Shown piece by piece: positions 32,448 to 61,850 of a stretch of DNA of 64,000 bases (the stretch's first letter is position 1; the number at the start of each line of letters is the position of its first letter). The stretch comes from Octopus sinensis. Its lineage: Eukaryota. The notes below the pieces were generated by a model. The model saw nothing but the letters and a program-made list of their open reading frames with translations. It made no database searches and had not been told where the DNA came from. A program made the translations under genes and the position numbers. The stretch is from the NCBI RefSeq assembly GCF_006345805.1, contig NC_043002.1, positions 34,844,001-34,908,000 of the forward strand. The letters run 5' to 3'.

Positions 32448-32947
32448 TCATGTGAGTGGCAGAGTGTTTGGTGCATTGAGTGTAGCTTGAGCAAGAATGT
32501 TGATAGCAGTGAGATCTGCTTCAGTCAGTTCAGTGCCACCACTTGAGGTACACTCAACCTCATATTCAACTTGGTTAGGAGCAATAAAAAACAAAGGTGC
32601 TTCAACACTCTGCTCAACACTTTCAGTGGCTCGTGCTGTCTCGGTTGGGTCCTGTATCTGTTCTTCATTTTGGACAAGTTCAGCAGCAACCCAAGTTTCT
32701 TGTTGATCTGGAGTGACAGCAGCAGTGGCATCAGAAGTAAATACAGAATAGGTATTCGAACCAACAGTTATCTTAAGCTGAGGACATGGCAAGTCAGGCT
32801 TCTTTCGTTTAGGTGCAGGGTATATTTCTCCTGTGTGCTGAGCTGCATGGCTACGTAGATATTCTTTCCGTAAAAAGCGTCGACCACAATGCTGGCACTC
32901 ATAGCGTTTCAAACCCATGTGGGCCTCAATATGGCGCTTCAGACTCC
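32448..32947 (-). CDS. Terminal exon: end of finger 5, finger 6 and acidic tail
   Basis: [40 protein letters not shown]..., stop at 32448-32450. Confidence 0.93.
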
Positions 32948-33926
32948 CTAAAAAGATAAAGAAAAAAATGGCATTTAATGAATAAAATTATTATATCATT
33001 TTAGGTAATTAATTTAAGTAAGCTGATTACAAAACACTTGTGTACACATCATAAAGAGAACAGCGTCCTGGTTACTGTTCACCACTAAATCCTAAAGTTG
33101 ATGGCATCAACTAAACAGACAGAGGCATGCAGAGCACTCTGCCTCTCATGCCAAAAGACAATAACAAATAACTATTTTCTAACTTTTTACTCTATGGCTG
33201 GTATCTAAACATCACAGCTCTTGTTTAACATAAAAATAAATTTAGCAAACTAAACACCTTCCTCTAATTAACTCAATACTTTTAACATATTCTTCATACA
33301 GAAAAAAGGCAGCAGTAGAGAAGATCAAGTATGCTATTACTTACTCATTGCAGTGAACACACGGCTGCATTCTGCACATTTGTAAACTTTAGGAACTGCA
33401 GGATGCTTGGCTTCCATATGTGCATTCAAACGACTATCAGAAGCAAATGGTCGATTGCATATTTCACACTTCCGCATCTGATCCTTGTCTTTTTCATGAA
33501 CTGACATATGAGCTAAAAGAGACTGGGTCCTCGGGAAACCTTTACCACAAACACTGCACCTGCAAATTGGAGGTCAAAGATATTTTCACTATACACAAAT
33601 AGAAAAAAATTGGAAACACTTTAAATGAACTTTTATTGGAAACTCTCAGCAAATATATGGGAGTCAATATTCTATTAGACAAAGTAGCATGCCATGTGTG
33701 AGTGCACATACTATTTTGTATATATACACCAAAATACATGTGATTATACATAAACCACTACAACATCTGAGCAACAGTATATATGTATTAAAATACACCA
33801 CAAGCACTCAGTCCCCTCTGTGGGATGGTTGGTGTTAGGAAAGGCATCCAGCTGTAAAAACCATGCCAAAAACAGACACAGTAGCCTGGAGTAGTCTTCT
33901 ACCTGGCCAGCAGATGTTAAACAAAG

Positions 33927-33958
<32 letters not shown>

Positions 33959-36900
33959 TATATGTGGAAGATTATTACCTCACTTATAAACAGGTGGGGT
34001 TAATGACAGGAAGAGCAACCTGATTTAGAAAACTCTACCTCCGACACACACTCACCTAACCCATGCAAGCATGGAAAAGTAGATGTTAAAATGATGATTA
34101 TATGCACAGTCTACTGAACTGAAAATTACTACCATCCAAGTGCTTCCTTCCTCTATCCTTCACCTGTCACATCCTGCATGTCATATTATACAGGGTCAAG
34201 GAAGGGATGGTTGAAAGGATGTTTATGTTTGCTTACAACTACATAAGCTTCCAAAACAATTAGTCCAAGTGTGGTACATGCTGCCAAGTTATACTTGGTT
34301 GCAAGTGATGGCTCATCATCATCATAATCTAACATTTGTTTTCCATGCTGGCAAACCAGAGAGCCACACTAAGCTCTATTGGTATAGATTTTACTTTGCT
34401 AGGTGGGTCTTCTCAAACACAACATCACCAGTTGTTTCAGTCATTCATCATCATCTCTGTGAAGCTCAGCATCCTAAGGTCATTTCTCACTTTGTCTCAT
34501 GCCTTCCTGGGTCTTCTCTTTCCACAGGTTCCCTCCACATTTAGAGATCAGCATTATTTTTTGTAGCTGCCCTCATCCATACTCATAACATGGCCAATAC
34601 CAGTGCAGTCTTCTCTCTTGCATACTGCAGTTGAGGTCTTTTATACCTAATTTATTTCTCAATACATTTACACTTTGTCATACATGCACATTGACATTGT
34701 TTATCCAGTGGAGCATGCTGACTTCATTTCATTCAAGCTTTCACATGTCCTCTGCAGTCAAAGCCCATGGGGGAAGGAAATGATACAATGGATAGCATAA
34801 CCTTCAAAACAGTATGCTGGCAGAAGAGAAAAGGAAGGGCAGACAGAGAGGGATGGAATGCCTTTTATCAAGCTTGACTGGAAGTTAAACAGCAACAACA
34901 GTTACAACATGCAACAGTCCTGATACAAATTCTACTTACAGATATGGTTTCTCTCCTGTGTGACGTCTCATGTGGATACGAACATATTTCCGTTCAGTAA
35001 ATCGCTTGCCACAGACATCACAACCAAAAGGTTTTTGACCAGAGTGTGTACTCATATGAACTGGCAAAAGAAAAATGAGATCATATCAACACTAAACACT
35101 ACACCACAGCACAATAACATTGTCCTACTGTCATCAAAGTACAATAACACAATTCCATTGTCCTCATAATACAATAATTTTGTACTATTGTCACCATAGT
35201 TCAGTAACATAGTCTCACTGTCACAACTCTGTCAGGATGGTCATGCTTGGAACCTCTTTTATCACAAGAACAACATGCAGCTAAACAATAAATCCACAAA
35301 GGGAGGGATACACATGTCACAAAAATGTATACAGATACACACATTAAAATAAGTGGTATACAACCTACATTATTAGTATACACACACCTTGGAGTTTTAC
35401 AATGAAAAAATTATAGCAATACATATGCATATAGCACTCACCCACCCTGTACAAATCATCATCATCATCATTTAATATCTGTTGTCCATGGGTTGGACAG
35501 TTTGACCAGGGCTAGCAAGCTAGAAGGCTGCACCAGATTCCAGTCTGATTTGGCATGGCCTTTTATTATAGTCCTGGTGTATAGGTGCAGGTGTGGCAAG
35601 TAGTTAATAAGTTTGCTTCTCAACCACATGGTTTCAGGTTCAGCCCCACTGTGTGGCATCTTAAGTTAAGTGTCTTCTACTATAGCTCCAAGCTGATCAA
35701 AGCATTGTGAGTGGATGGAAAGTGAAAGAAATTCATTGTATATGTGTGTGTGTGTGTTTGTGGGGGGCTTGTCTCAACATCATGAGATAGCTGTAAATGA
35801 GTGTTACCATCATATAAGCAAAATCAGTCATTTCTCATATTCTGTGAAAAAATGCCTGGTCATGAATAAATATTATCTGCTTGGAAACAGGTGATGGATG
35901 GTATCAGAAAGGGCATCTGATAGTAGAAGCTTCAATAAACTCCATCCATGCAAGCATTGGAAAAGTGGATGTTAAAATGATGATGATGATAATGAAAGTG
36001 AAAGAAACCCATCATAAGTGTGCATGTGTGTGTGTCCTTATCTTGAAGTATAATAGTTGTAAATAAGTGACATCATTAGACAACTGATATTATTTATTTC
36101 CGATTTTCTATGAAAACATATCTATAATATTACCTTGCTCAGAAATAGGTTAGGGTTAGCAACAGAAAAGGCATCTGACCATAGAAATCTGGTCCAATGA
36201 ATGCTGTTTGACCAATGTAAGCAAGGAAAAATGGACATTAAAATGAAAAGAAAAAAAATTATGTATATACATGTATGTATGTATGTGTGCATGTATATTT
36301 ATTTACATTTGAGTGGCTGGCATTAGGAAGGGCATCCAGCTGTAGAAACTCTGCCAGATCAAGACTGGAACCTGATGCAGCCATCTGGTTTGCCAGTCCT
36401 CAGTCAAATCATCCAACCCATGCTAGCATGGAAAGTGGACGTTAAACGATGATGATTTGCATGTTTCCAAAAATTACTCAGTTACAGGCCATCTGTGGGC
36501 TTGCAACTTAGAAGATGTGTGGAATAAGACATCCATATGCCTTGCTTGAAAAACAAGAAAGAATTATTGAAAAGAAAGGCATCTGGCTGTAAAACAATGC
36601 CTCAATAATAGGTAATAATCGAGCAGAGAAAAAAAAACTAAAGACCAAATGAACATACACACACACTTTACAATATGGGACTGTAGAAAGTCAAACACAA
36701 CTCACAATAAGAGATTTTACACACACACACAAATACACATATGTATGCATATACTTTTTATAACAAGATAAAGAGATATACTCACCTTGCAATGTTACAG
36801 GGCCTCCAAACATTAAGCCACAAATATTACAAGCAAGCTGCTTCTTCCGTTTCATACGCTTCCCTTTAGTTTTCTTTGTTAAAAATGTCTTACTGTCTAC

Positions 36901-39900
36901 CATGGTGGTATTTTCAGTCTGGGTGCCTTCCACTGTTTCTTCAAATTCTTCAGCTTCAGCCAGTTCAATTTCCTTGACAATCTCTTCAGCTTTTGTCATC
37001 TCCACATCACCTTCAACTGTTGACACAATAGTTTCTTGTATCTTGCTCTCTGCTGCATTCTGTCTCCTCTGAATCATTGAAGTTAATGCAGACACATCAT
37101 CAGCTATATGGATGTCATTAACATCAGGTTTTATATTGTCGACAGCATTCTGCACCTCTTCACTCAAGTGATCTTCGACAGTCTTTTCCGGTACATGTAC
37201 AGTAACACTCTTTTGTTGGCGCCGTGAAGTTTGATTTTTAATTGTTTCAATGTTCACCTTCTTTACAATTGTCTTTGGTTGATCCAGTTCCACATCATCG
37301 ACCTCATCAAGATTGTCGCTGTCCTCTGTGTTACAAGCAACCTCATTGTAAGTCTTAACACAAGGTGACAAAACCTCAATTGTTTTACTGGAATCGGTGA
37401 TCTCCTGTGGCAGAATAGCATTGCTCTCTGCTAGAGTTGTTTCTTCTGGTTGTGCTGTTATATTGTCCGGTTCCACAACCTGTACTGCATTTAAGAAGAC
37501 ATCTTCTATATTACTTTCTTCCTGACTGGTCAGTGTCTTTGTTTCAAGCTCCCCTGTTGGAGGTGGGGAAGGACTCTTCACTTTAAGACCAACAGATGTC
37601 AGCACTGTTGCATCTGCCTCTTTTTCACCTTTTAGCTCAACTGTCTGCTCTAAACTCTGAAATAAACAACAATAATTATTAGAGAATCAGAAATAACATT
37701 ACTTGATCTTCCTGATTTATTACAAGAGTCAAAACATAACTGAACTAAATGCTTTAGCTGGTTAGCTAAATAATTCCATGTATTGGTCAATGTCACTATG
37801 AGAACCACAACAGCAAAACACAAAGTAATGTACATGGTTGGTTACATAGATTTTTTACTGCAATTCTTTCTGAAAAGTTTGGAGAAATCATGTTATACTA
37901 TCTTTCAAAGTTATAGTATTGTAGTTTTATGATTTCTGTATGTGATTTTTGCATTATTGTATAACCAAGACATGGTTTTCCAGTTCACCCAAGAGGTCGG
38001 TAAATAGGAATAAAGAACTGATTCAACTCAAAGTATGATAAACAGCATGAAAAACAGACTTAAATGATGATATGTTGTCCGTAATTGTATGCCATAAGGC
38101 TGCTATGTGCATGTGCTTGTGTCTGCAGACATGTATTACATTAACTGGTTGTCTCTGTGAGTGTCTAATAATAAACTACCCAATAACTGTTTATAGAATT
38201 TATTTATCTATTTATAATATTTATGTGTGTATGTGTATATGAATGAATGAATGCATGTATGTTTTGTATGCTTGAATGAATCATTTAGCACATAAAAATG
38301 ATTAGATTTTCATGGGGTAGATAAAAAATTTTGAAGTGAATGTCTGTCTAAATGTAAAGGGTATAACACAAAGGCGGCGAGCTGGCAGAAACGTTAGCGC
38401 GCCGGGCGAAATGCTTAGCAGTATTTCGTCTGCAGTTATGTTGTGAGTTCAAATTCCGCCGAGGTCGACTTTGCCTTTCATCCTTTCAGGGTCAATTAGA
38501 TAAGTACCAGTTATGCACTGGGGTCGAAGTAATCGACTTAATACCTATGTCTGTCCTTGTTTGTCCCCTCTATGTTTAGCCCCCTGTGGGTAATAAAGAA
38601 ATAGGTATAACACATGTGAATTGTGAATACATTATGAAATGGTTGAGGCCATCTACTTACAATGAAAGGACTGATATCCATTTGGAAGAACTCGGCAAAC
38701 TTAGAGAGTTTCTCTTCTTGAGATTTAAGTTTCTTATCTTCAGGGAAGACTCGCGTTAAACAACATTTATCAAGGAATTCTTTCAGATCACGATTCATTC
38801 CAATCCAATAGTAGCTACCATGCAGGAGTTCTTTGGTCCGTTCCACACCACGATGGATACCTGGAGTAAGGAAATGGTTAATTACTGGTTTAACTCTACA
38901 CATTGGATAAGTGGGTATGGTATGTACTCAGTTCACTCTATTCAGTGGATACAAGGTTAAATTATTACATATTAGCAATATGATAATTTTATACTTCACT
39001 CTCTCCAGTTTTGGACAACACACAAAACTGTCAAAGTCACAACATATGCTAGGCCCCACAACCTCTGATTATCATTCCTAGTGACTCTAAATACATAACA
39101 TAGACAATTCTGACTGAAAGAACAATTGTCTGCTTCAGGACCAGAAAATATTTCAGCTCTGATCAAATGCTTCTTATACACAAGCCCAAGTGACCACCTT
39201 TAAAAGAAAACCAACAACTGGCAAAGAGTTCTAGCCCATGGATACATGGTTTCCTCTTCACCTTGTCTAACACTACTACAACCTGGCCATAATAATAAGA
39301 GCCTATGATCCTCTCAACTAATTGATTACATCCCATCTACACTAAAATCTAACCAAACTTCCAACATATTGGCAGCATGTAGCAAAGAAACCAGGACTAC
39401 GTTTTATAGAATTATTTCTCATCAGCTACATTTATTTTAGTTTCAGAGTACACAGCAACAAGGTACATTCACTAGGTACAGTTTGGAAGTACCTGTTTTA
39501 TAGTTTCGTGTAGCTTATTATAGATTACAAAGAGGAGAAATGTACGGCAGGGAATTTCACTCGAAGGTGTATCACTGACAGTTTTATTAGCATTATGATA
39601 AAGGAGAATCAAGTGCACTATTGTTCTTAAATATGATTGTGAAAGGTGGTAGTATAGAAGGGAGAGAACGATGTGTGTGTGTGCGTGCAAGTAATAAAGA
39701 GTCCTCAGGTGAAACGATAGAAGGTCCTAGGGAAGGAGGGGAGTAAAATCTGTAGCAGTAAATGAATGAATGGAATAATGTTTAGATTGAAGAGAGTAGG
39801 GGAGTCAATTTGAGTATTGTTCATACCTAAGACTAATGCAGGATAATTACTACCCAAGTAGCAACCTAAGAACAAGTGAACAAGTTTGGCTCAGTTAAAA

Positions 39901-42900
39901 GGAGATATTTGAGTAGGATCTCATCACATGGATATAAAGTGCAAGTTAGGGAGCTAGTATAATAATCAATTACTAAATCACTGAGTCAACATAGGGAACC
40001 TCTACACATCATTTGATAAGCAAGAAATAGCAGCTACTCCCTCTTAAAATACACCTTACCATTTTAAAAAGAAAGCATATACTGGTTAATGTAGTCCTGT
40101 GTTTTTGCATTATACTTTTAAATAATAAGATCCTTATTGGATCAGAGCTTACCTAGAAATATTATTATCAAACAAGTACCAAATTAAGATTCATGTAAGA
40201 TTTTGGTACTTTATTTCAGTTTTGACTTCAAAGAAGAGCAGGGATTTTTGTCTAAATGAGGAGGTAAGGATAATGCCTGTAATGACATTTGAAAGGACTC
40301 TGACATGGTTTATTTTCAACATGTAAATCAATGTCTGCAGGAATTTCAGAGAATTAACATCCAAGGAAAGGTAAAACAGTAAAGGTGGGAGTAGGGGTGA
40401 CATAAGGATAAAAGTGGTCTTGAGTGGTGAAGGCATTTTTTGAGCATTTGAGAGGGACAACTGCTGTTGTAGTAAAGACAGAAAAGGTAGAGTGAAGAGA
40501 ATTACTTAAATGACCTTCCTTTCAAAGTGGTTTCAGGTGTTTGCACAACAGTAGCAACAGCACTGCCCAGATGCGAGTGCTGCATTCAAATCTCTGGAGG
40601 CTTTTAATTGATTAGCAACAGGTCTGTCATGTGTATAGGAGCAAGTATTATTAGGAAGTGACAACAACTGGTTGTTAATGTACAGGAAGAAAAGTGTGAG
40701 AAAACAACTGAACTTAAGGGGCATATTAGAGTAGATACAGTGTGGGTCAGAGAAAGCTCCCAATCCCAAAAGTGAGAAATGGATAAAGTACATAGATAGG
40801 CAGTTTAGCAAGGCCTACTTTTCTTTAGAAACTCTTCTAATTTGGTTTAATTTAAATTTGTCGATATTTACTTTAAAGAGATACAAGTAAGAGGATAGCT
40901 TTTTTCAGGAAATTGTGGGTGTATGGAAGACCTGGTAGTGTTTCATATGGAATCTGCAAAGAAACAGTAACAGAGAGGAGACGTAGGGAACACAGCAAGA
41001 GACATCACCACCTCCCTCATTTTTTTTTTGTTATTGATCAACAGGTTCTGACTACTCTGGTATTTGAGTTTGGTAAAATCAACATGCTGTTTCAACAGAC
41101 AACTAACCCGTTGGTGCACACCTTCTTTACAGGTATGATTGGATCATGGCTTCTCTATAATGGCTTTGTTGCCCTTTTTCGAGTTTGACATTTAATAATT
41201 TTGGGACCCACACACTCTGACTCCCGACACAGTACACAACACTAACATATTACCTGTTCTAAGAATGTGTGATTCTGTAACAGCATTTTGTTTCTCAGCT
41301 GCTGTCATCAGAACTTTGCGTAAACGACCAATAGTTTGGTTTTCTGTGTAATATAACTGGCCACCATTAACACGATACTTTGGAGATTCTCTGTCAGCAT
41401 AGTCATTTTCCTCAGTGGTTATGTCTGCTGGTTTAGCACCGGTCAAGTGGAACTGTTTGATAATCTCATACAACCTGATTTGGACTTCTTCATTCAATGG
41501 TTCTGGTTCTGCATCAGCCTGACAACAAAGCAGAGCAACAATATTAGACCATGTCTAATGGTACAAGTACAGTAAATGTCAACAGTTACTTTAGACAATC
41601 TAGTTAGAAAAGAATTAATGGTTGATAAGGGTGGAGTGCTACCTACATTCAGAAAAGGATATAAGGTGAATATCAGAAATATTCTACAACTTAGAGAAAT
41701 GCCACACCGCTAGTGTTCAGGACTAATCCCCACTGCTAGTGTGCAGGGTCACTCCACATTACCAGTGTCAAGAGTCACTCTACATGCTAGTGATTATTCA
41801 CTATCAGGTGCCAGTAAGCTTTTGATAAATGCTTATGTTGACTACAGTAAATTGATTGTATAGATGCAGCACATTCAAATGATTATGAAGTACACAGTCA
41901 TGAGGTTCCAAGTTCAATCCCACAATGTGACATCTTGGATAAGTGAATTTAACAAGGCACCAGGTCAACCAAAGCCTTGGAAGTGAAATTGGGTAAAAAG
42001 AGACTGTGTGATAGTCTATAGGATGGATTTCACCAGTAATTTGAAAGGCCTGGCAACCATAACCCATGGCCTCTACATGGGATGTAGCCAGTCCACTTAT
42101 GCATACCTTTCCTTCTTGGGACACAAAACTCTACTTGTGAAGACATGTTGGAGACAAGTGAAAATCGAAATTGATCAACATCAATGGAAATTGCAGCTGT
42201 GATACCAGTGCTGGTGGCACGTAAAAAGCACCATCCGATCGTGGCCGTTTGCCAGCCTCGTCTGGCACCTGTGCCGGTGGCACGTAAAAAGCACCCACTA
42301 CACTCACGGAGTGGTTGGCATTAGGAAGGGCATCCAGCTGTAGAAACATTGCCAGATCAGACTGGGCCTGGTGCAGCCTTCTGGCTTCCCAGACCCCAGT
42401 TGAACCGTCCAACCCACGCTAGCATGGAAAGCGGACGCTAAATGATGATGATGATGATGATGTGTCAAACTAAGTCCACCTGAAAACTACATTAAGGGTA
42501 CACACGTCTGTGGAATACTCAGCCACTTACACACTAACTTAATGATGAATAAATAAGTTAATTGAAGAACTAAATACTTATTGTCAAAACCAATAAAAAT
42601 TAACTAACTCTATTGATGGAGAGAAAGTGAGTGAGAGAGAAAGACTGCTGGAACAAATACATTACCAAAACAGCAAGATGCGGAGAAGAAATACTTACAG
42701 CCTTGACTAAATTCAAGAAACTTTCTTGAGCAGGGTTAGTGTCAGCTTCCGACTTCCTTCGCTCACTGCCATGTTCACAAACAGGACATGTCTTCACTAA
42801 GGCAGCACCATCCATTGTCATACCTTTCCAATAATAATCATTCAAGCGATCTAAAGTCCTTAATCGCCCCAAGTGAGTCCCTAGGAAGAAAAGAAATAAC

Positions 42901-45900
42901 AAGAATATATATTCAAATACAGAAAGAACTATAAAGACCACTACCACCACACAATTGCAATATACTTGGCTCACTACCCACACAAGACAGTTGTACTCTG
43001 CACTCCAGAATACAAAATATATTCCTTGACCACACTGAAGCTCAAACCATAGCTTCACCTGAACTAACTGTAACAACAATAAAAATAACAAGTGATATAT
43101 TATACAATCAACCTATGAAACATACTGATTACTACTCCACTGTTTCAACAGGCTTCTTCTTTACTAAAAGGGATTAGATGAATCTTTTGTTGTACAAAAT
43201 GTCATTACTCACATCAATTTTGTGAATCACAATACCTTGAGATCCAATCCCAGAATTTCCTCCCAGGTCTTCTTTGCCCTATTGTGGTAACTAATACTAC
43301 CAGCACAGTTTATTCTAACCTAGATGCGGTGCATTCACATCACATGTGTATACCAGCAGAGTCATTTCTTGCCAAGTCTCTCTCTCTCTTCCATTCACAC
43401 TGATATCATATAACCAATAAATCACATTTCACTTATTTCTAACTTTCACTTTCAATATCTAACTCGCTACCACATTGTACTACACTCTTACACACTATTA
43501 AGTAATACCGCATTCTTCTACATTCATACACATGTACCACTATCATGTAGTACATTATTCTTGTACATGTATTACCACATTTTTACATGTCTCATTACCA
43601 TGCAGTATCATATTCTTACACATGTTTCATCACTATGTTGTACCACATTCTTACACATAATTCATATAGTTTGCTCTTTCCACTATTAACCCCATCAAGG
43701 TAGAAAGATTTATACATTAATCCTTTTGACATCAACCTGCCTGAAACCGCTTCTGGTTCAGTAATACAAATGTCTTGTTTTCAAAAGTTCTTAATTAAAA
43801 TCTTCTACCAAACCTTAGTCAAAATTTATGTCCCTAACACTAGCTTAAAGACAACTAAGTTATTTTACTAAATTCTTTGTTATATTTAAAATTGATTGAA
43901 AGAAATACAGAGCATCTCAACAGAAATATGGTAACAAAAGGGTTAAAGTCATCTTACCATTTTCCAGCACATGAGCTGCCTTTAAAAGCTTGAAGCGTTC
44001 CAGTTCATCCATCACAATTTTCTTTAGCTTGGAGCCTGATTTATAATACATTTCATCGTCTTGAATGACATAATTCTGAGCCATTTTCCGGATCACTCGT
44101 TTATAGTCATCTTTTATACCAGGAGGGTAACGTTTCTGTTCAATATATAGCTTTAGAGCGAGGTAATAATCATCTAATGGTACCTGCATGAATCACAAGA
44201 AGATGTCTTAGAATATGGAGAGAGAGAGAGAGAGGACCATAATTTGTAAAAGACAAATGCATATGTCTAAATTATTAGAAATTTCTAAAGTTTCTGTTGT
44301 GCTTCAGGTCTGGGCAAGGCTTTCTATATAAGAACAACAGTTACCCATGAAAACTTCTCCCTCTTCATGCCACCAATGTTGTTCAAGCAAGAGCAAGCAT
44401 CAAAACATTTTAACACCAAAGTAGTCATAATGGAACTCAGAACATAAAGAGCCAGGGCAAATACTGCAAAGCACTTGATCTGGTGTTCTACAAAATATGC
44501 CATTCCACTGTCTTTATCAGATATAAGTTCTTCAGACACAATTTTTTCCAGGCTATTGAACAAAAGTATATATTTACAATTTCTATATCTTATACTATGT
44601 TTTGGTTTCTGAATGTTATCAGATGTCTCATTATACATAGTTTCATGCTGGATTCAAACAAGAAACCTTTATTTGTAAACTAGGGGTTATCCTCAAGGCC
44701 ACTGGCTCACATCAGTAATGAGTTACTAATTGGCTGATGAGGAAAGAATGTAACACTGAGTTTGTGTGAAACCACATAAGATGAGAAACAGCAAAGGATG
44801 TAACTGTTACTAGGTCTTCTGAAACAGATATGAGGAAGAAAGAATGATATCCTCAAACTGAAGGCCAAGTCCAAATGTTTCCTATAAAAGAGGATTTCTT
44901 AATTACAGGTAGCCAAAAGTTAGGTTGTGGTGGTAAACCTGGCCATAGCAGCTACAGCTGATTCTAACTCAGAACACAGACAGTAAAAATTCCGCAAGGT
45001 ACCTGGTCAGATACTCTAACAAGTCCACCTGTCTAGACCAGTACTTTATTGATCCAACAAAAATAAGAGAAAACTTCATCTAGATTTAGTGAAAATTTGT
45101 TTCTACTGAATTTTTTGATAATAGATAAATATTTATTATATCAACAAAGTAAACCTAAAAGATAAAGTTTAATTTTAACTAATGTTTCTTTGAAGTTGTG
45201 CATTTGTGTGCGTGCATGCATGTTTGATACCCAATGCACAAAGGAAAAGAAAAGTGTAAATAAGGTTTTCATAATGAAATAAAATTTTTCTAATTGAAAA
45301 AAGTAATCATAAAATTTCAAAATAAAATCTTAATATACACTGAAAATGGTGTGCATTTGCTCAGGTGGTCGAAATGGGATTTGAGTGATGGTCAGTCATA
45401 TGGATACAGACATACTTAGCAAAGGAAAATACAATTCGCACACAAACAAATTCCTGTGCATACCTGCAACTAAAAATTCGATGGAACATTGTCCCAGACA
45501 CTAGGATTTATAATCAAAACAATCTGACCTCTGTGTAAAGTCCTACAAGATGTAAAATCAAAAGGAATATTACTCACATCACGATTTTCTCGTTTCTTTC
45601 GTTTATTGCCTTTCTTGGGTGAATAACGGTTGACAACGTCTAGATAATTCTTCTTGCGTCCACGACGACCAGGTGACATTTCTGAACCTGATAAACACTC
45701 ATCCTCATCAGCAGGGACATTACTAGTGTCGTCTTCTATTGAGGTTTGGGTGGACTGAGAAGATGGTGGTCGCCCACGCTGAGGTTTGACAGGTTTGTCA
45801 TTGGTTGAATACAAAAGTTTCTTTAACTTAACAGAGACAGGTGTGGAGGAAGCTGGAGTGGATGAGGTTTTGTTAGTGACATTATTATTATTATTAGTAG

Positions 45901-48900
45901 TAGTTGTTGTAGTAGTAGTAGTAGTAGTGGTAGTAGCAGTAGTAGTAGTAGTTGTTGTACTGCTTTCTGTTGGAGTATCCAAAATATTTTCAGAATGAAG
46001 CTCATCAGGGTTGACTTCCCCATTTACTTCTGTAGCAGCAACAGGTGCTTGCGATACATTCTCTTCGGCTACTTCTCCTTCTCCAGGGTAATAATACACT
46101 ACAGGTAAATTTTTTTCAGAACTGCTCGGCTGTTCTGATGGGTTTGCCAGCAAACTCTCTGTCAGACCTTTACTTACTTTCATCATCTTTGTTTGAATAG
46201 ATTGAATCTGAGATTCAGACAGATTTGGATCCAAGTCGGATCCAGGCTGACGGAAAGATATACTCAATGGTAGACATGGTTCCCTACAACAGACAGAACA
46301 TCATAAGTGACAGTTATTGATAAAGACAGACAAACACAATGAGGCATACAGACAAGTACACTGAAGATTACAATAACAGACTCTCACCTATGATGTACGA
46401 GGTATACTGGAGTATATTCAGCAATCTGTGGTCGGTTTATTCGATGTGGCATCAACCAAAGATCAAGACTTTCATGCCAGTTGCGAGGATAGGATTTAGC
46501 AAACTTTCTCAGGTCTGCCTCCAGGTCTTTCCACATGCCATCTAAATTTTAATCAATAATACAGCCACAATGAATCACTGTCAAATACATTAGACTAATC
46601 ACTTCAATAAATAGCGAAGAAAAAAAAAAGGGTGATTTTTTTTTTGTATTTTACTTCTTGGGTCCACAGGAAGAGGCAGTATATATGGTATTCACAGGCC
46701 TTCTTAGACCAGTATGACTGAGGCTTTAAACGTTCCTCTTGAACCTTTATAGGTCAACACCTGCAGGAAAAGCATGAGTAGAGGTGACAGTCTAAGAGGG
46801 CTGATGTCCTGAGGAAAATGGACTGAGTATAGTGATTGGTGCCAAGATTTGGACAAAAAAGTGATGACAAGAGAAGATAAGTGGGACAGGAATGCTGGGG
46901 TAGAGACAGCATGAACCCATCAAGCTCCAAGAAGCAGAAGTCATTGCAGTAGTAGTAGTAGTAGAAAAGGTAGAGATAGGAGACAGTGCACCTGTTGGCC
47001 AGGGCATGTCTGTGAGTGATTTTTAACCTAATGAAGAAAATAAATATAAATATTAAAATTAACATACTTGTATCTTGGCAACATCCAAACTTCAAGTCAA
47101 TGGCATGTTCTTTATCAGTGAGTAAATCAAAGCGACCAGCAATCTTTCTACAACTGAATGACTCTTTACGGAATCTCAAGGTTTTCATGACACCATATCT
47201 AAAAAAAAAAAAAAAAAAAAAAATTAAAAACAACCTTCTAAACCAGTGGTTCTGAATTGGACCCACATGACCCTTTCAGATCCATATAAGATTTTGTTAA
47301 AATCTATGAGCAATAAATTGACTATTTTTACAATACACAAAATATTCTAATTTTTTTATACAATTTCTAATATTTAATTATAAAAATATAATTAAGATTT
47401 TTTTTAAAACAATGAATGGATATGTGGGTCTAGTTGAGTAAAATAGGAATCAAAGGGGTCCATAGGCAAAAAAAAGGGTTAAGGACCACCGTTCTAAATG
47501 GTCATCAATAAAAACACTGCATAATCAAAAGCATGTTGTATAACGGGACTGTATAAATAACTGTATGTTGTGTCAGTCATCTTGTCAACCACTAAAAGTA
47601 TTGTCTTTGACAGTCACAGTAATGTGGCCCTTAGATTGAAACTAGGTTTGATACAACTCAAATTTGGTTTCAAAAGATTAAATATATGTGTGTGTGTGTG
47701 TGTGTGCATGTGAGGGCATGCATGCACACACACAGAGAAATTATGAATGTAAATAATAAAACATAGAATAATGTGTTGCCAAAACCTAAGAGTATATTCC
47801 TCAAGTTACATGCCACCAAAAGGATACATATTTCAGGCACACACATGTATATACACTGAATATATATGATTTCTATACCTACTCAAAACACACACCCAGT
47901 ATTCAATACTCAATAAGAAGATCATGTAAACCTCTCACCTTGCAATAAGACTGAGAATAAACTGCAACACCTCCGTTATAGGTACAATTCCATCTTTGTA
48001 CTCAACAAACCGTGCTTCTGGCCACAAAGAATAAACATCTAAACAGAGGATAACTTGCACAGCTGAGCCTCCAGTCACCTTGATAGGACCAATAATATCA
48101 ACCTCCGCCTGGAAGTACATAATCAACGCTTTAACTCTTTATCATTTAAACTGGCCATATTTGGCCCAAATATGCTATATGTTTTATGTTCAGATTAGCC
48201 AGATCTGGCCTCTTATATCTTAATCTTACCATGTCATTCTAAGAATACACAATCACATCATCAAAATCTTAAAACTACAAAGTAATGAATGATTAATTCA
48301 AGACAATGTGACTAAATAAAAATTACATTTCACAGAGTAATCTGAATGCTAAAGGTTAAATAATGTGAAAATTTTCTATTACTGGGAGACAAATCAGCAA
48401 TAACACTAAACTACCAAACTATTTATCCATTTGGACTTAGTTCTGTGCTCTACTAAATCCCATCCTCTACTTTACTTTCCAGTAAAAAGACAGGAAATAA
48501 CAGTATCATGTGGATAGGGCACACACAAGTATGCCTACAAGCTAAAATATCATGCAGGGTATTAGTAATTCAGATTTCACATCCTAAATCATAGTTTAAG
48601 CAACTTTGTATTGAAACAGATGTGACTTTTGGAAATCTAAAGTTACACAAAGTCCACCTAGGTTACTTGTGAAAGTCATCAGTAATCGTTGACCAATTCT
48701 TCCTGTGCCCTTTCTATCATCAAAGCGCAGGCATGGCTGAGTAGTTAAGAAGTTACCTTTGATTCCCTTGAGTGGTATCTTGGGTAAATGTCTTCTACTA
48801 CAGCCTTGTGACTAAAATTTCATAGACAGAAACTGTACAAAAAGTTGTCTTGTGTGTATATATATATATCATCATCATCATCATACCCATTCTCTATGCT

Positions 48901-49872
48901 GGCATGGGCTGGACAGTTTGACCGGAGCTGATAAGGCGAGGGGCCAGACTTGGTTCCATTGTCTGTTCTAGCATGATTTCAATAGCTGGATGCTCTTCCT
49001 AATGCCAACCACTCCATAGAATGAAGGGGATGTTTTTATGTGACAACAGCACCAGTGGCATGGTTTCTACAGCTGGATGCCCTTTCTAACATCAACTACT
49101 CCACAGAGTCTAATGGGTGCTTTTCATGTGGCACAAGTGCTACATATGTGTATGTGTGTGTTTGCTTACATGTCTTTTCACACAATTTTCACTTCGGTAG
49201 CAATATTATTTGTTTATGTCTAATATAAACAATATGTTTGATAGCTAGGTAAATCTGACATGCTGGCGTCATGAAAAGCATTTGGTCAAGATGCATTCAA
49301 CCCATACCTGCACAGAAAAAGCAGACGTAAAAATGATAATGTTGATAAAACGTAACCATTTTAGACAACAATTAGACTGGATATCACTTCTGTCAACCTC
49401 CTCTAACTTTGTGATAGTTGATAAGGGACAATTGTTATCTTGCAAAGAGAGACATGGCCTAACTTTACTGCAGGTACCATTAACTTTTACAGCCAGGCTG
49501 GACAATAAACTGAATTGATCATATATTGTTTAGATCAAGCCCGCCACACCTTTAAAGTCGCTACTATCTGCTCAATTAGGAGTTATTTAAGGCTATTTAA
49601 TGTAAAGATCAATGAGATTACCTTTTGCCAAAAGTGATTGATCACTTCCCCCAAGGTCTCTGGAAATGGTAAAGCTGCCATTAGTTCGGCAACATGTTCT
49701 TCCCTTTCTGATGGTGTTTTGCTGGCAGGAGTGGCAGTAGCTGAGTAGCCACTGCGGTAAGCTTGGCAAACTGGACATTCTTTTATGTAATTGCGGACAG
49801 TTTCAATGGTTTTAGCCAAATAATAATGGTCGCTAAATTCCTTCAATGTCTTGTCATATGTTCTGTGGTTTC
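32448..49872 (-). CDS. GIN1/Ginger-type integrase-derived protein with 3 H2C2 modules, AT-hook-like motifs and 6 C2H2 zinc fingers; 13 exons, 5'-partial
   Basis: Exons (minus) 49872-49622, 48108-47939, 47198-47068, 46541-46388, 46283-45578, 44183-43958, 42880-42699, 41518-41254, 38860-38661, 37656-36786, 35060-34940, 33559-33345, 32947-32448. All GT-AG and phase-consistent; 3992 nt with no internal stop, at least 1330 aa. Confidence 0.9.
33345..33559 (-). CDS. Exon: fingers 3, 4 and start of 5
   Basis: CSVCGKGF...[13 protein letters not shown]...[14 protein letters not shown]. Confidence 0.93.
34310..34790 (-). mobile_element. Degenerate RTE LINE 3' fragment
   Basis: Similar to the RT C-terminus and 3' end of the RTE at 52666-53975. 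Confidence 0.6.
34940..35060 (-). CDS. Exon: end of finger 1 and finger 2
   Basis: [40 protein letters not shown]. Confidence 0.93.
36310..36456 (+). mobile_element. RTE 3'-end-derived repeat
   Basis: TTAGGAAGGGCATCCAGCTGTAGAAAC...GGACGTTAAACGATGATGAT. Confidence 0.85.
36786..37656 (-). CDS. Exon: long acidic linker and start of C2H2 finger 1
   Basis: Open 871 nt ending [25 protein letters not shown]. Confidence 0.9.
38371..38603 (+). mobile_element. Intact tRNA-related SINE with 11-bp target-site duplication
   Basis: TSD GGTATAACACA at 38360-38370 and 38604-38614; B-box-like GAGTTCAAATTCC; A-rich tail. Confidence 0.9.
38661..38860 (-). CDS. Exon: H2C2 module 3, second half
   Basis: [34 protein letters not shown]. 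Confidence 0.88.
41254..41518 (-). CDS. Exon: H2C2 module 3, first half
   Basis: [10 protein letters not shown]...[18 protein letters not shown]. Confidence 0.88.
42160..42461 (+). mobile_element. RTE 3'-end-derived repeat
   Basis: Two GTGGCACGTAAAAAGCACC repeats and a (GAT)n tail. Confidence 0.88.
42699..42880 (-). CDS. Exon: H2C2 module 2, second half
   Basis: [35 protein letters not shown]. Confidence 0.9.
43721..43942 (+). mobile_element. piggyBac-derived MITE with the same termini as the 6721-7796 element
   Basis: TTAA at 43717-43720 and 43943-43946; right end GAAATATGGTAACAAAAGGG versus GAAATATAGTAACGAAAGGG. Confidence 0.8.
43958..44183 (-). CDS. Exon: H2C2 module 2, first half
   Basis: YIEQKRYP...[20 protein letters not shown]...[17 protein letters not shown]. 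Confidence 0.9.
45578..46283 (-). CDS. Exon: disordered region with poly-Thr/Asn, AT-hook-like motifs and a basic NLS-like stretch
   Basis: EPCLP...TTTTTTATTTTTTTTTTTTNNNNN...PQRGRPP...RRGRKK...KKGNKRKKR. Confidence 0.88.
46388..46541 (-). CDS. Exon: integrase core C-terminal helices (not in the supplied ORF track)
   Basis: [34 protein letters not shown]...[10 protein letters not shown]; needed to restore phase between its neighbours. Confidence 0.85.
47068..47198 (-). CDS. Exon: integrase core, degenerate second Asp region
   Basis: [15 protein letters not shown]; poly-T acceptor, GTATGT donor. Confidence 0.85.
47939..48108 (-). CDS. Exon: integrase core, first Asp region
   Basis: AEVDIIGP...[14 protein letters not shown]. 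Confidence 0.9.
48131..48359 (-). mobile_element. TTAA MITE, same family as 10839-11134
   Basis: TTAACTCTTTATCATTTAAA...CTGAATGCTAAAGGTTAA. Confidence 0.8.
49622..49872 (-). CDS. Exon: integrase H2C2 module 1, second half
   Basis: [37 protein letters not shown]...HFWQK. Confidence 0.88.
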
Positions 49873-50426
49873 CTGTCAAAGAAAGTACAAAAAATTCCAT
49901 TAATAATGAATTAGCGAATGATGATTATGATGAAAATAATGACAAAGAGGTGGAGGAGAGCAATAAAAAGCAAATGCCATAAGTCAGACTTCCCATCAAG
50001 CAATGGGAATAACATCAACTGTTGTTAGATTGCAGAGGGCTTACAACTTCAGTAAACCTATCACTGTTAATAGATAATACTTTTACCGAGTTGAAGCTAT
50101 TGAAAGGATACCTGGAGAACATTGTTATAATTTCAGTTCCCATCAGAACTGACTTAGTCATTTATCCTCTTTAAGTAACTAAAGCAATTTACAGAAATGC
50201 ACTGGGGGTTATTTAAGAAATACTCTAAGTCTCTATGCTGCTCAACAAAGACAACACACACAGCATCACATTTATTTTCTCACACTATCATATCAATACA
50301 CAAATTTATAGGTGGGTTTTTCCTCGAGCAGGTAGATAAAGATTAAAGTTAAAATGAAAAGGCAAACCATTTGGCATCACTTGAAAAGACATTTAATTTA
50401 GATCAAGAATATAGATATACAATCTT

Positions 50427-50666
50427 TTACAGCTGTTTCAAGAAGAGTCGAACGTGTAGATCATATTGAGTAAGGATTCCATAGGTTGAGTACTCTGTCT
50501 TCAGAGAGGGAGAAGTCAGAGAGATGTTAAGTCCCCAATCGAGGATATTAGTGTATTCCAGTTTGTCAAGAATGAAGGAAGGGTCAGAGTAAAATAGGAA
50601 TGCATTAGATAGATCCATGATCAAATGAAAATTACGGTTATAAGTAACATCCAATAGTGGCTTCAA
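50427..50666 (-). mobile_element. Possible LINE RT remnant
   Basis: IMDLSNAF...FILDKLE resembles the LDLSKAFD...LLxKL RT motif. Confidence 0.4.
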
Positions 50667-50937
50667 GTGAGAATGTTCAATGATAATTCATGGCGAGGAT
50701 TAGTGAAAGTTACCAGTTCCAGTTTTGAATGGAACTGTTAGTGTATTATTTCACCTATTGTTAAAGCTCCACAGTCAGGCAGGGATTTTGGATCCTACTG
50801 TGCCACACCAGTACATGCTGTCACATACTAGCAGTCAAATCATTACCAGGAAGAATAAAAGGCGAAATTGACTTACACAAGATTTGAACTCAATGTGAAG
50901 ATCTAGACAAAAGACAGGAAAGAAAGCTAAACATAAT

Positions 50938-51310
50938 AGGCACAGGAGTGGCTGTGTGGTAAGTAGCTTCCTTACCAACCACATGGTTCCAGGTTCAGTC
51001 TCACTGCATGACACCTTGGGCAAGTGTCTTTTACTATAGCCTCAGGCTGACCAAAGCCTTCTGAGTGGATTTGGTAGACGGAAACTGAAAGAAGCCCTTA
51101 GGGTGTGTGTTTGTCTCCCCCCCCACCCACCCACACACCATTTCTTGACAACCGATGTTGGTGCATTTATGTCCCCGTAACTTAGCAGTTCAGCAAAAGA
51201 GACCGATAGAATAAGAACTAGGCTTACAAAGAATAAGTCCTGGGACTGATTTGTTCGACTAAAGGCGGTGCTCCAGCATGGTCGCAGTCAAATGACTGAA
51301 AAGAATATAA
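50938..51310 (+). mobile_element. tRNA-derived SINE
   Basis: A-box TGGCTGTGTGG, B-box GGTTCAGTC, conserved tail. Confidence 0.88.
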
Positions 51311-51738
51311 GTATAGCTAGAGTTACTATAAGTAGTCCATTTAGATGACAGAAAGCCAGTATTAGTGCACAAAGACATCAGCTGCATTACAGATGATGCC
51401 AATCTCTCCACAACAAACATCCTAAATGATTGGACAGTGGAGGGAGTGCAACATGTCCAGATACCACTACACCTCAAATGATCACTGCATGTCGGAGTGA
51501 ATAGATGGAGTAAGCCTAGAAAAATAGATCTAATATATATATATATATATATATGAAGCCTCCTAACATACACACACATGGCCAGTCAGAGAGTGACCAG
51601 TGGTTTCACAAGCAACTTTAAATAATTACATTATTGCTCTAATGTTTTAGAGTGTGCTTTTTTTTCAGATTTTAGGTTTTTGAACAACTGCTTTTTTATT
51701 TATTTATATTTATATTATATATATATATATATATATAT

Positions 51739-51896
51739 AGGAGTGGCTGTGTGGTAAGTAGCTTGCTTACGAACCACATGGTTCCTGGTTCAGTCCCACT
51801 GTGTGGCACCTTAGGCAAGTGTCTTCTACTATAGCCTCGGGCTGACCAAAGCTTTATGAGTGGATTTGGTAGACGGAAACTGAAAGAAGCCTGTTG

Positions 51897-51927
<31 letters not shown>

Positions 51928-52147
51928 ATATGTTTGTGTGTCTGTATTTGTCCCGCCAACATTGCTTGACAACCAATGCTGGTGTGTTTACGTCACTGTA
52001 AACTTAGCGGTTCAGCAAAAAGAGACCAATAGAATAAGTACTAGGCTTACAAAGAATAAGTCCTGGGGTCGATTTGCTTGACTAAAGGCGGTGCTCCAGC
52101 ATGGCCACAGTCAAATGACTGAAACAAATAAAAGAGTAAAAAGAGTA
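51739..52147 (+). mobile_element. tRNA-derived SINE
   Basis: A-box, B-box GGTTCAGTCCC, internal (TA)n, tail GGCGGTGCTCCAGCATGGCCACAGTCAAATGACTGAAAC. Confidence 0.9.
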
Positions 52148-52665
52148 TATATATGCACACACAATCATCATTAAGTGTGACTAAGGTGCTAATGCACCTA
52201 CATTGCCTGTTAGCATGTGTGTATGCATATCCGTGCTCTTCCTACAGCATTAAGAATATTTTAATCCTTATTTCTAGCAATGTGTCAGCATCCTTAGTCA
52301 CATTTAGTGATGATTGAATTTTTCCTTTATGGTACCACATTGCACCTAGCTGTTTATATTAAATTTATATATATCATCATCAACATCACTGCTCCATATA
52401 TATATATGGCTGATCATCTATATACCATGGGTTTGCAAAATCAAAACTGACCCAGTGCTGCACAACTATACTAATAATTGTACTTTTACTATATGTGGCT
52501 CACAAACAAGTCAATGAGAGAGCTTCTATGTCAGCATAACATGGACAGAGCTAATGTCCTATTTTCTTATTTTCAGTACCAGCTGTTCAATTTTCTCATT
52601 AGTGTTTCCATAATATCACAGAAAGAGACATTTTAAATATATATATATATATATACATGTATATA

Positions 52666-53975
52666 TCATCATCATCGTTTAATGTCTGTTTTCCATGCTA
52701 GCATGGGTTGGACGGTTTGACCGGGGTCTGGGAAGCCAGGAGGCTGCACCAGGCTCCAGTCTGATCTGGATGCCCTTCCTAACGCCAACGACTCCGTGAG
52801 TGTAGTGGGTGCTTTTTACATGCCACTGGCACAGGTGCCGGGGGAGGCTGGCAACGGCCACAATCAGTTGGTGCTTTTTACGTGCCACCAGCACGGAAGC
52901 CAGTCAAGGCAGTGCTGGTACTGGCCACGTTCGGATGGTGCTTTTTACGTGCCACCAGCACAGGTATCACAACTACAATTTCCATTTGATTTTTATTTGA
53001 TGTTGATGTACTTGACTCAATAGGTCTCCTCAAGCACAGCAGGTTGCCCTACAATCCAAGGTAAGCACAGCAGGTCGTTCTGCGATCCAAGGTACTTTGG
53101 ATGGGCTGGTGCTGCTATGTGAAGCTGGTGCAGGAAACAGCCATGAACTCACGTTGTTGGGTCTTCGCAGTCACAGCATATCTCCAGAGGTCTTGGTCTT
53201 TCGCCATTGCCTCTGTGAGGCCCAACGTTCGAAGGTCATGCTTGACCACCTCATCCCATGTCTTCCTGGGTCTACCTCTATCCCGGATTCCTTCAACTGT
53301 TTGGGAGTGGCACTTCTTCACACATCTCTCCTCATCCATCCGTAGTACATGACCATACTAGCGCAAACGTCTCTCTTGCATGCCACATCCAGTGCTTCTT
53401 ACGTCCAGCATTTCTCTCAGGGTGCTTACACTCTGTTGTGAGTGCACACTGACATTACACATCCAGTGGATCATGCTAGCTTCATTTCTTTCAATCCTAT
53501 GCATGTCCCCTGCAGTCACAGACCATGTTTCAGCGCAAGTCCTCTCTTGCATGCCACCATCCAGTGCTTCTTACGTCCAGCACTTTCTCTCAGGGTGCTA
53601 TCACTTCTGTTGTGAGTGCACACTGACATTACACATCCGTGGGCATGCTTAGCTTCAACATTTCTCTGTTCAATCCTAATGCATGTCCCCTGCAGTCACA
53701 GACCTATGTTTCACTACCGTGACTCGTTGCAGTTCGCACATGTGCGTCGTACAATCTACCTTTCACTCTGAGCGAGAGACCCTTTGTCAGCAGTAGGGGT
53801 AGAAGCTTTCTAAACTTTGCCTAGGCTATTTGTATTCTGGTGGTGACACTGAGCATACACCTCCACTACTAACTTGGTCACCTAGGTAGCGAAAACTATC
53901 AACTACTTCTAGTTTCCACCACTAGAGTGTGATGGAATCTGTTTTCTGAGTATCTGTGGTGTCTATTGCCCCCCT
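52666..53975 (-). mobile_element. 5'-truncated RTE-clade LINE: RT C-terminus, 3' UTR and (GAT)n tail
   Basis: KLEVVDSFRYLGDQVSSG, MHRIERNEASMIHWMCNV, VEGIRDRGRPRKTWDEVVKHDL..LWRYAV; 172-bp internal duplication. Confidence 0.9.
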
Positions 53976-54421
53976 ATATATATACACACACACACAGTAT
54001 AGTTGCTGGATATGGCCAGTCATTAGTTTCACACCTATAATGATGTTCAGAATGGTAAAGGTGACTCGTCAGACTCATTGGCCAGAGGCACGCAACCTCT
54101 CTATAATATGAGGTAGGAATAGTCTCAGTCAGCTAGGGTTGTAAAAAACCCCACAAAACAAAATTCTAGTGAATGACAGCTCTTCTGGACAGGAATTAAC
54201 TCCCTTTGACTGGTTACAGTGCATAGGGGAATTCCGTGTTTGCAACACAATTTTCTTCTGACGAGGGCACTACTTACACAGCTCACATTTGGAGTTTAAG
54301 AAGGCCATTGGGTCAAGCAAATTCTTTAGGAACCTTGCCCTGTCAGCCAAGCAAAGTTTACATCATCCACTCCCATTAAAATAGAGCCCAGGTTGTTCTG
54401 AGAGCTTGCATTTAATTTTCT

Positions 54422-54570
54422 CATGGAGTGGTTGGCGTTAGGAAGGGCATCCAGCTGTAGAAACACTGCCAGATCAGACTGGGCCTGGTGCAGCCTACTG
54501 GCTTCCCAGACCCCAGTTGAACCGTCCAACCCATGCTAGCATGGAAAGCGGACGTTAAACGATGATGATA
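54422..54570 (+). mobile_element. RTE 3'-end-derived repeat
   Basis: Nearly identical to 42308-42461. Confidence 0.88.

Positions 54571-61816: not shown

Positions 61817-61850
<34 letters not shown>

Follow-up and report, generated by a model that had tools for sequence, protein, structure and literature searches.

Integrase genes that have been domesticated by their hosts are known mostly from vertebrates (GIN1/2, KRBA2, SCAND3, NYNRIN). Here we describe a gene of Octopus sinensis in which integrase parts are joined to an array of C2H2 zinc fingers. It lies on the minus strand of a 64,000-nt stretch of contig NC_043002.1 (positions 34,844,001 to 34,908,000, assembly GCF_006345805.1), hereafter called the window, and its product comprises, in order, a YPYY+H2C2 module, an integrase core fold, a disordered linker, two further YPYY+H2C2 modules, an acidic linker, six C2H2 fingers and a C-terminal motif. 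Among the closest described systems, GIN1 and GIN2 are likewise host genes of integrase origin, combining a YPYY motif with an H2C2 finger and a core of the RNase-H fold (PMC2836005), and GIN1 is among the best non-orthologous matches to the octopus gene family. This family differs from GIN1/GIN2 in lacking the GPY/F motif and any shared intron, in the triplication of its zinc module, and in the addition of the C2H2 array and the C-terminal motif; moreover, GIN1/GIN2 are found in vertebrates, whereas the integrase-C2H2 family is found in lophotrochozoans.

A second parallel is Imagin of malacostracans (PMC12863088, 2026), which is also single-copy, multi-exon and under purifying selection, has the same YPYY+H2C2+core arrangement, has lost the Asp-Asp-Glu (DDE) triad and is hundreds of millions of years old (PMC12863088). 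Unlike the octopus protein, Imagin is limited to a single module without a C2H2 array; its gene lies within an MMUT intron and the protein is reported to be cytoplasmic (PMC12863088), whereas the neighbours of the octopus gene in the window are a SAC3_GANP gene and repeats. The Imagin paper mentions neither molluscs nor C2H2 fingers (PMC12863088). In mammals, KRBA2 and SCAND3/ZBED9 resemble the octopus gene in carrying a captured integrase fused to KRAB or SCAN modules, but their integrase belongs to the Ginger2 clade and has no C2H2 array beside it (PMC3575427). Both are vertebrate-specific and much younger than the mollusc/brachiopod family described here.

The vertebrate protein POGZ combines a C2H2 array and an inactive DDE/RNase-H-fold transposase in one polypeptide and acts on chromatin; its transposase is of the pogo/Tc1 type and not of the retroviral type, the domain order is reversed, and HHCC modules are absent. 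Judged by these general features, POGZ may offer the best functional analogy for the octopus gene. In yeast Spt10, an integrase-type H2C2 finger is re-used by the host as a DNA-binding element, a comparison that is limited to this finger. The integrases of prototype foamy virus (PFV) and Ty3 (PDB 3L2Q, 4E7K, 7Q5B) share with the octopus family the succession of N-terminal extension, HHCC domain and catalytic core, whereas the family lacks the DDE triad and the C-terminal SH3-like domain and carries the N-terminal unit three times. None of GIN1/GIN2, Imagin, KRBA2/SCAND3 and POGZ has tandem integrase N-terminal modules or their combination with a C2H2 array. Our literature searches found no published description of such a family and no paper on LOC106874323, the orthologue in Octopus bimaculoides.

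A fourteen-exon host gene

Stop-to-stop frames, splice-site scans and tblastn searches defined 13 phase-consistent exons between positions 49872 and 32448, separated by 12 spliceosomal introns that all obey the GT-AG rule within this 17.4-kb part of the gene. Spliced together, the exons form an unbroken frame of 3,992 nt, or 1,330 codons including the stop, which reproduces the exon count, the frame and both end points proposed in the initial annotation of the window. Twelve of the blocks were located by the frame and splice-site scans, and exon 4 (47198-47068) by tblastn with the O. bimaculoides protein. The outermost exon, the first in the initial annotation, is in fact exon 2 of 14, and the YPYY motif and first His of module 1 are encoded outside the window. 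Residues 1-99 of the O. bimaculoides protein (MKIKKKHVDL...HVDNQ) had no match in the window in a sensitive tblastn search that included positions 49873-64000. Collinearity with the O. bimaculoides locus (CM046606.1, L001) explains why the first coding exon was not found: window position 64000 corresponds to L001 12488 and exon 1 to L001 10001-10298, which places this exon ~2.2 kb past the window end, beyond an intron 1 that measures 18,382 nt in O. bimaculoides.

Comparison of the two octopuses revealed the hallmarks of a host gene. The O. bimaculoides protein matched the window exons at 94-100% identity (tblastn, E down to 1e-156), all 13 exons map to L001 with AG/GT at every boundary, and the L001 sequence, once spliced, reproduces residues 101-1424 of the LOC106874323 protein as annotated (~1,424 aa). 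Synonymous divergence (dS) was 0.062 and nonsynonymous divergence (dN) 0.013, giving a dN/dS of 0.20; dN was zero in modules 2 and 3 and in the C-terminal tail, and dN/dS reached 0.30 in the exon 6 linker. The introns are 82-94% identical and the locus is collinear. Window-internal dispersed repeats cover 16% of the gene's intron bases and no exon base. The earlier description of introns full of decayed transposons was thus right about the presence of dispersed repeats and somewhat overstated as to their amount within the window. Dispersed copies of the gene did not appear: there is one copy in the window, and in O. bimaculoides one cluster on one contig carries it. The gene is single-copy and under purifying selection and is a host gene, not a transposon, as the initial annotation had proposed in describing a captured integrase fused to a C2H2 array.

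Transcript data show that the integrase part and the fingers are joined in one mRNA in a cuttlefish. In whole-animal RNA-seq of Sepia pharaonis (SRR3011300; PMC5541922), a contig carries the whole reading frame, 4,548 nt without interruption from Met to stop, in agreement with the single transcription unit that had been proposed. The 1,515-aa protein (P0002) is uninterrupted on ~5-kb contigs from eight sequencing runs including SRR3011300, and a second coleoid transcript (P0003) likewise links the integrase part to the fingers.

We characterized the integrase part by profile and structure comparison. Pfam recognized Integrase_H2C2 (PF17921) in three stretches (90.5 bits), together with a weak match to the integrase-type H2C2 family PF09337, whereas the rve core gave no match in the protein even at E = 1. 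A profile built from 12 orthologues, however, aligned to tenrec GIN1 with a probability of 99.7% (hhalign, E 4.6e-26, 296 colinear columns), pairing family positions 1-352 with GIN1 2-304 and thus covering the entire catalytic core as well as the YPYY motif and H2C2 finger. In the PDB, the sequence profile also matched the integrase core of PFV, its positions 186-342 aligning with PFV 125-280 at E 4e-13, as well as the Ty3 H2C2 zinc domain. An AlphaFold model of residues 1-348 reached a predicted local distance difference test (pLDDT) score of 80-93 over 181-320 and showed the strand and helix order of an integrase core. In Foldseek searches with this model, the best match was PFV 4e7k_A (E 7.6e-9, 334 columns), Ty3 7q5b_A followed with E 9.1e-9 over 343 columns, and HIV integrase cores superposed with a template modelling (TM) score of 0.65 and a root-mean-square deviation of 3.8 Å. 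The integrase core named in the initial annotation, though missed by Pfam rve, is accordingly supported by profile alignments and fold comparison alike. Landmarks conserved in the 12-sequence alignment of the core are GP, D..S.W.E, RYG.M, W, P.R and AEY.P..L..GRE. The first third of the protein amounts to an entire integrase of the retroviral/Ty3/Ginger kind, less the DDE triad and the C-terminal GPY/F domain.

The DDE triad itself has been lost. Mapped through PFV D128, D185 and E221, the first position is Asp only in cephalopods and Lingula, with gastropods and bivalves having Q, M, K or S there; the second Asp is replaced in all members (Arg/Lys and others), as is the Glu (Met/Trp and others). 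Lingula, for example, reads TSEGQTF in the catalytic region, with the second and third positions replaced. Judged by these substitutions, the integrase part is catalytically dead.

The three zinc modules are mutually 20-31% identical. Modules 1 and 2 carry the YPYY motif, Y..YP..KR.(I/V)RK..F/Y...LY(F/Y), which is degenerate in module 3. Across the 12 orthologues, the zinc ligands of modules 1 and 2 are invariant; in module 3, molluscs have H, H and 'CC' in place of CxxC, Lingula has CAVC, and in Pecten the ligands are lost. Both of the further H2C2 modules that had been proposed are present, the third with 'CC' where CxxC was expected. Modules 2 and 3, modelled at pLDDT 78.7, gave confident fold matches only to the first 100-120 residues of PFV and Ty3 integrase, that is, to the N-terminal extension and HHCC domain. 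Downstream, the acidic linker (57 Asp/Glu per 273 residues) and the six C2H2 fingers found by Pfam bear out the domain order first described. All C2H2 zinc ligands are invariant in the 12-sequence alignment, and in molluscs fingers 5 and 6 have nearly fixed recognition residues (A/x-R-S-R; R-E-Y-S/x). The same alignment defines a conserved C-terminal motif, VQYEVEC..L(T/S)EADLxAIxLLAQAS. The AT-hook-like motifs noted earlier, RGRP and GRRGRKK, exist in octopus and are absent from most orthologues. Because the length of the coding poly-Thr/poly-Asn tract in exon 6 (~45880-45960, minus strand) differs from that in O. bimaculoides, this tract is a microsatellite within the reading frame.

Age, source of the integrase and related multi-module proteins

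A search of 1.84 billion representative proteins with a profile covering the first 855 residues yielded 1,904 matches, 13 of them below 1e-30; the phyletic range given here is drawn from the best 150. The top matches are 1,026-1,559 aa long and show the same order of parts. They include gastropods (Haliotis, Patella, Lymnaea, Bulinus, Babylonia, Littorina, Nucella, Batillaria, Plakobranchus), bivalves (Sinanodonta, Pecten) and the brachiopod Lingula. The full architecture is present in proteins of Haliotis, Patella, Lymnaea, Bulinus, Babylonia, Littorina, Sinanodonta, Pecten and Lingula, in addition to cephalopods, so that the same order of parts is predicted in at least 12 species of two phyla, with a single orthologue per species among the family members. 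Protein searches with a tail profile (only short unnamed fragments) and with modules 2-3 (one fragment) added no phyletic range. All orthologues are annotated as uncharacterized, as hypothetical or with a generic finger name; no well-characterized orthologue turned up, in line with the initial impression of an architecture without a named gene.

To date the gene, we compared the exon structures solved for octopus, Pecten and Lingula. Pecten keeps all 13 octopus coding introns at the same position and phase. In Lingula, 12 of the 13 have a counterpart: nine match the octopus gene exactly in both residue and phase, and three more, all of phase 0, fall at equivalent boundaries of the linkers. This count excludes one interval expected to hold the module-2 intron. 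Every solved module is split by a phase-1 intron between its two His, within a Gly codon except in Lingula module 3 (Asp). This shared intron implies that the YPYY+HHCC module was duplicated as an exon pair before molluscs and brachiopods separated. Given that snails, bivalves and a brachiopod have the same gene with the same exon structure, the gene predates the mollusc-brachiopod split and is over half a billion years old, and it has retained its domain order and nearly all intron positions since. The flanking genes of the orthologues differ between phyla (Pecten, Lingula). A SAC3_GANP neighbour of the LENG8 type, which had been suggested for a synteny comparison, is present in the octopus window, but LENG8 does not occur within 10 kb of the orthologue in Pecten or Lingula. 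At the Lingula anatina locus, introns of the orthologue harbour two cofilin/ADF genes on the other strand, and two more follow just downstream. The suggested connection with the octopus expansion of C2H2 genes does not hold for a gene that is single-copy and older than the mollusc-brachiopod split.

We next asked from which kind of element the integrase was taken. Ginger1 transposases and Gin-1/Gin-2 are defined by a YPYY motif, an H2C2 finger, a DDE core and a GPY/F motif, and three intron positions are common to Gin-1, Gin-2 and Ginger1-5_HM (PMC2836005). The family has the first two of these features together with the core fold. No orthologue has GP[YF] after the core, whereas GIN1 reads WVGPCVI at 395, and the homology to GIN1 ends at GIN1 residue 304. 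Tenrec GIN1 has introns at aa 48 (phase 1), 118, 220, 284 and 343 (phase 0) and 438 (phase 1), none of which (0/6) has a counterpart in the family. A Ginger1-like gene of the crustacean Oratosquilla oratoria (XP_076065010), examined as a control, shares with GIN1 a phase-0 intron just before CxxC and lacks the phase-1 intron of the family; this multi-exon gene encodes an rve domain recognized by Pfam, a GPF motif and a second YPYY+H2C2 module at the C-terminus. The best matches outside the family are GIN1, many short proteins starting at the YPYY motif and also polyproteins of long terminal repeat (LTR) elements. In a neighbour-joining tree of 105 H2C2+core sequences, which contained no Repbase Ginger1 references, the family was monophyletic (80% bootstrap) and not nested with GIN1, and its mean distance was 1.54 to all three classes, including the short Ginger-like proteins and the LTR polyproteins. 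The family is an independent domestication and not a GIN1 orthologue. Its source is a YPYY-bearing integrase of the Gypsy/Ginger1 type, and the tree does not settle between a Ginger and an LTR element. The original label 'Ginger/GIN-type' is not demonstrated, as the GPY/F motif is absent, GIN1 introns are not shared and the tree does not place the family.

Proteins with several YPYY+H2C2 modules also occur outside molluscs and brachiopods. The sea urchin Lytechinus encodes one with four modules and a C2H2 array (XP_041475074 / XP_054765160), which might be the histone-enhancer factor MBF-1. In Lytechinus variegatus (CM031025.1), each of the four modules is interrupted between its His residues by a phase-1 intron that falls in a Gly codon, a feature shared with all three modules in octopus and scallop and at least two in Lingula, but not with GIN1 or the crustacean Ginger1-like gene. 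In addition, the Lytechinus protein ends in VQHEVEIQ, matching the VQYEVEC motif of the family, and among 202 fetched proteins a string of the VQ[YH]EVE type was found in the family and in Lytechinus only. The link to the sea urchin rests on intron position and terminal motif, as hhalign of the family against the sea-urchin protein returned a generic finger match only, and the urchin protein lacks the core and has its fingers in one exon. Common descent of the urchin gene and the mollusc/brachiopod family is possible.

Further host-like proteins carry such integrase modules. Mya (WAR21828) and Dreissena have three modules and fingers; the fishes Engraulis (XP_063039816) and Knipowitschia (CAL9686655) have three modules and THAP domains, in models that also carry a D-Tyr-tRNA deacylase domain and may represent read-through; and the cricket Anabrus (XP_067007179) has one module and a core remnant. 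Bivalve 'ZN653-like' multi-module genes were considered as family members and rejected, as the module intron is not shared; the Dreissena gene, lacking this intron, is probably an independent capture. Among the multi-module host-like proteins, the signature of the family was found only in the sea-urchin gene. The family may be the lophotrochozoan branch of an undescribed, bilaterian-wide class of DNA-binding proteins built from tandem YPYY+HHCC integrase modules and a C2H2 array and going back to a single domestication before the protostome/deuterostome split, a reading that we hold to be less likely than not. The dead intasome parts of such a class might link DNA sites to one another, much as architectural or insulator-like factors do.

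Function and competing explanations

In sum, we consider it highly probable that the octopus locus is an ancient, catalytically dead, domesticated integrase-C2H2 host gene. The product is most likely a nuclear, sequence-specific DNA-binding factor, whose C2H2 array, with its conserved recognition residues, would read a conserved DNA motif. The integrase part would neither cut nor join DNA, yet it may retain intasome-like self-association and non-catalytic DNA contact. Intasomes of retroviruses and Ty3 use the N-terminal extension together with the HHCC domain to contact DNA and the cores of partner subunits, and their cores dimerize. Given these roles, the octopus protein could assemble as a multimer, which, as a scaffold or architectural factor, might hold the sites it binds or bridge them, and the acidic linker and C-terminal motif would probably recruit partners. 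We put forward this scaffold or bridging mechanism tentatively, at somewhat less than even chances.

Several points weigh against this interpretation. The mechanism is extrapolated from domain knowledge and may not carry over to this protein. The first catalytic Asp is kept in cephalopods and Lingula, leaving some metal binding possible. The AT-hook-like motifs are not conserved and so cannot be central to function. The transcript evidence comes from cuttlefish and not from O. sinensis. The phyletic range represents the best 150 of 1,904 matches, so that absence elsewhere does not follow. Finally, Imagin is reported to be cytoplasmic in oocytes (PMC12863088), which shows that a dead integrase need not act on chromatin.

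The latter observation lends some weight to an alternative that we regard as unlikely, namely that the protein is a non-chromatin scaffold or an RNA-binding protein, for instance a cytoplasmic or maternal one like Imagin, with fingers that bind RNA or protein. Imagin, an independent dead Ginger1 integrase, accumulates in the oocyte cytoplasm (PMC12863088), and Pfam reports weak matches in the octopus protein to zf-C2H2_jaz and zf-met, finger types that bind double-stranded RNA. However, these scores lie under stronger zf-C2H2 matches, the six classical tandem fingers, some of them joined by TGEKPY linkers, are typical of DNA readers, and the three KRKK-type basic clusters of the protein resemble nuclear localization signals.

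Slightly less plausible still is a transposon-silencing zinc-finger protein of the KRAB/SCAN kind, engaged in an arms race and carrying the integrase as a relic or as a decoy against related elements. Vertebrate KRBA2 and SCAND3 provide a precedent of zinc-finger or KRAB/SCAN genes with captured integrase parts (PMC3575427), and octopus genomes are rich in C2H2 genes and transposons, as the initial annotation had pointed out when proposing transposon control. Yet the octopus gene is single-copy and unclustered, Pfam detects no KRAB, SCAN or BTB domain, and no transposon family present today approaches the age of the gene family. Moreover, the integrase part is strongly constrained, down to a dN of 0 in modules 2-3, and molluscs have conserved the number of fingers, their ligands and their recognition residues. 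Transposon control fits poorly with recognition residues that have remained almost unchanged across molluscs, unlike those of arms-race repressors.

We judge it very improbable that gene prediction has merged two adjacent genes, one integrase-derived and one encoding C2H2 fingers. The join depends on the junction of exons 10 and 11 alone, and the RNA support comes from species other than O. sinensis. On the other hand, phases match at every junction, exon 11 itself links the linker to finger 1, the ~5-kb contigs from eight runs hold both parts in one Met-to-stop frame, the second coleoid transcript shows the same join, and the order recurs in predictions from at least 12 species of two phyla. 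The idea that the locus is a Ginger element, still active or decayed not long ago, or the integrase of an LTR element that lies beside zinc-finger exons by chance, is hardly tenable, for although Ginger1 transposases and some Gypsy integrases have the same YPYY+H2C2+core arrangement (PMC2836005), the locus has 12 spliceosomal introns in its 17.4-kb part, is collinear in a second octopus with a dN/dS of 0.20, has lost the DDE triad, has no exon repeated in the window and recurs with the same introns in scallop and brachiopod.

Features of the window and significance

The exons of the integrase-C2H2 gene and the convergent LENG8/Thp3-like gene are collected in the table below.

Table. Coding features of the window (positions counted from its first nucleotide)
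Feature	Position	Strand	Basis
Intron 1, 3' part; coding exon 1 (aa 1-99: module 1 YPYY and first His) lies beyond the window	49873..64000	-	tblastn, O. bimaculoides collinearity
Exon 2: second half of H2C2 module 1 (second His, CxxC) and linker ending FWQK	49622..49872	-	phase-1 acceptor in Gly codon between the two His
Exon 3: first part of the integrase core; sole retained catalytic-position Asp	47939..48108	-	tblastn, profile alignment, residue mapping
Exon 4: middle of core; second catalytic Asp replaced	47068..47198	-	O. bimaculoides protein match, residue mapping
Exon 5: last core helices (GMWKDLE..W..L.P.R..AEYTP.YL); catalytic Glu position replaced	46388..46541	-	profile alignment, AlphaFold
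Exon 6: disordered Ser/Thr/Asn/Pro-rich linker with poly-Thr/poly-Asn, RGRP, GRRGRKK and basic KRKKR	45578..46283	-	tblastn, motif scan
Exon 7: module 2 YPYY and first His (VPLDDYY..RYPPG..YKR.IRK..MYY..AAHVLEN/G split)	43958..44183	-	tblastn, alignment
Exon 8: module 2 second His and CxxC	42699..42880	-	Pfam, tblastn, alignment
Exon 9: module 3 degenerate YPYY and first His (..LYY..ESHILRT/G split)	41254..41518	-	tblastn, alignment
Exon 10: module 3 second His, YYW, 'KCC' replacing CxxC, conserved helix (..KLSKFAEFF)	38661..38860	-	Pfam, alignment, model
Exon 11: acidic linker, basic cluster, first half of C2H2 finger 1 (LACNICG..)	36786..37656	-	tblastn, composition
Exon 12: end of finger 1, finger 2	34940..35060	-	Pfam, tblastn, alignment
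Exon 13: fingers 3 and 4, start of finger 5	33345..33559	-	Pfam, tblastn, alignment
Exon 14: end of finger 5, finger 6, KRKK cluster, C-terminal tail	32448..32947	-	conserved motif ~32478-32570; stop codon 32448-32450
LENG8/Thp3-like gene, convergent with the integrase-finger gene	2441-18663	+	SAC3_GANP PF03399, E 8e-16
LENG8-like gene, Gln/Pro-rich open reading frame	2441-2824	+	
LENG8-like gene, SAC3_GANP pieces	15999-16313, 16982-17353, 18406-18663	+	

The remainder of the window contains traces of mobile elements. An open reading frame (ORF) at 430-795 on the minus strand encodes a Pif1 helicase 2B domain (PF21530, E 1.6e-15) and is probably a fragment of a Helitron-type helicase. A dispersed repeat of ~150-300 bp has up to nine copies in the window (36308-36456, 42134-42458, 54425-54569, 10238-10540 and others) and also matches several sites of the O. 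bimaculoides locus at 81-91% identity; it resembles a short interspersed nuclear element and translates in one frame. Inside intron 1, an ORF fragment at 53118-53357 (minus strand) contains GRPRKTWDEVVKHDLRTLGL; it has no Pfam match and looks like the tail of a non-LTR retrotransposon ORF2.

In Lophotrochozoa, according to a 2023 survey, transposon-derived factors are almost entirely unexplored (PMC10027918). Crustacean Imagin (2026) extends domesticated integrase genes beyond vertebrates, and the octopus gene adds a lophotrochozoan case. This case is unusually clean, with one gene per genome, the same 14-exon plan in a cephalopod, a bivalve and a brachiopod, an integrase that is dead by sequence and nonetheless strongly constrained, a triplicated HHCC unit and a conserved C2H2 reader. 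Since cores of this type escape Pfam rve, comparable genes have probably been counted too low or hidden by repeat masking. The family represents a natural experiment in the re-use of non-catalytic integrase parts, namely the N-terminal extension, the HHCC domain and the core dimer, and its members are candidates for a conserved transcription or architectural factor in molluscan model systems.

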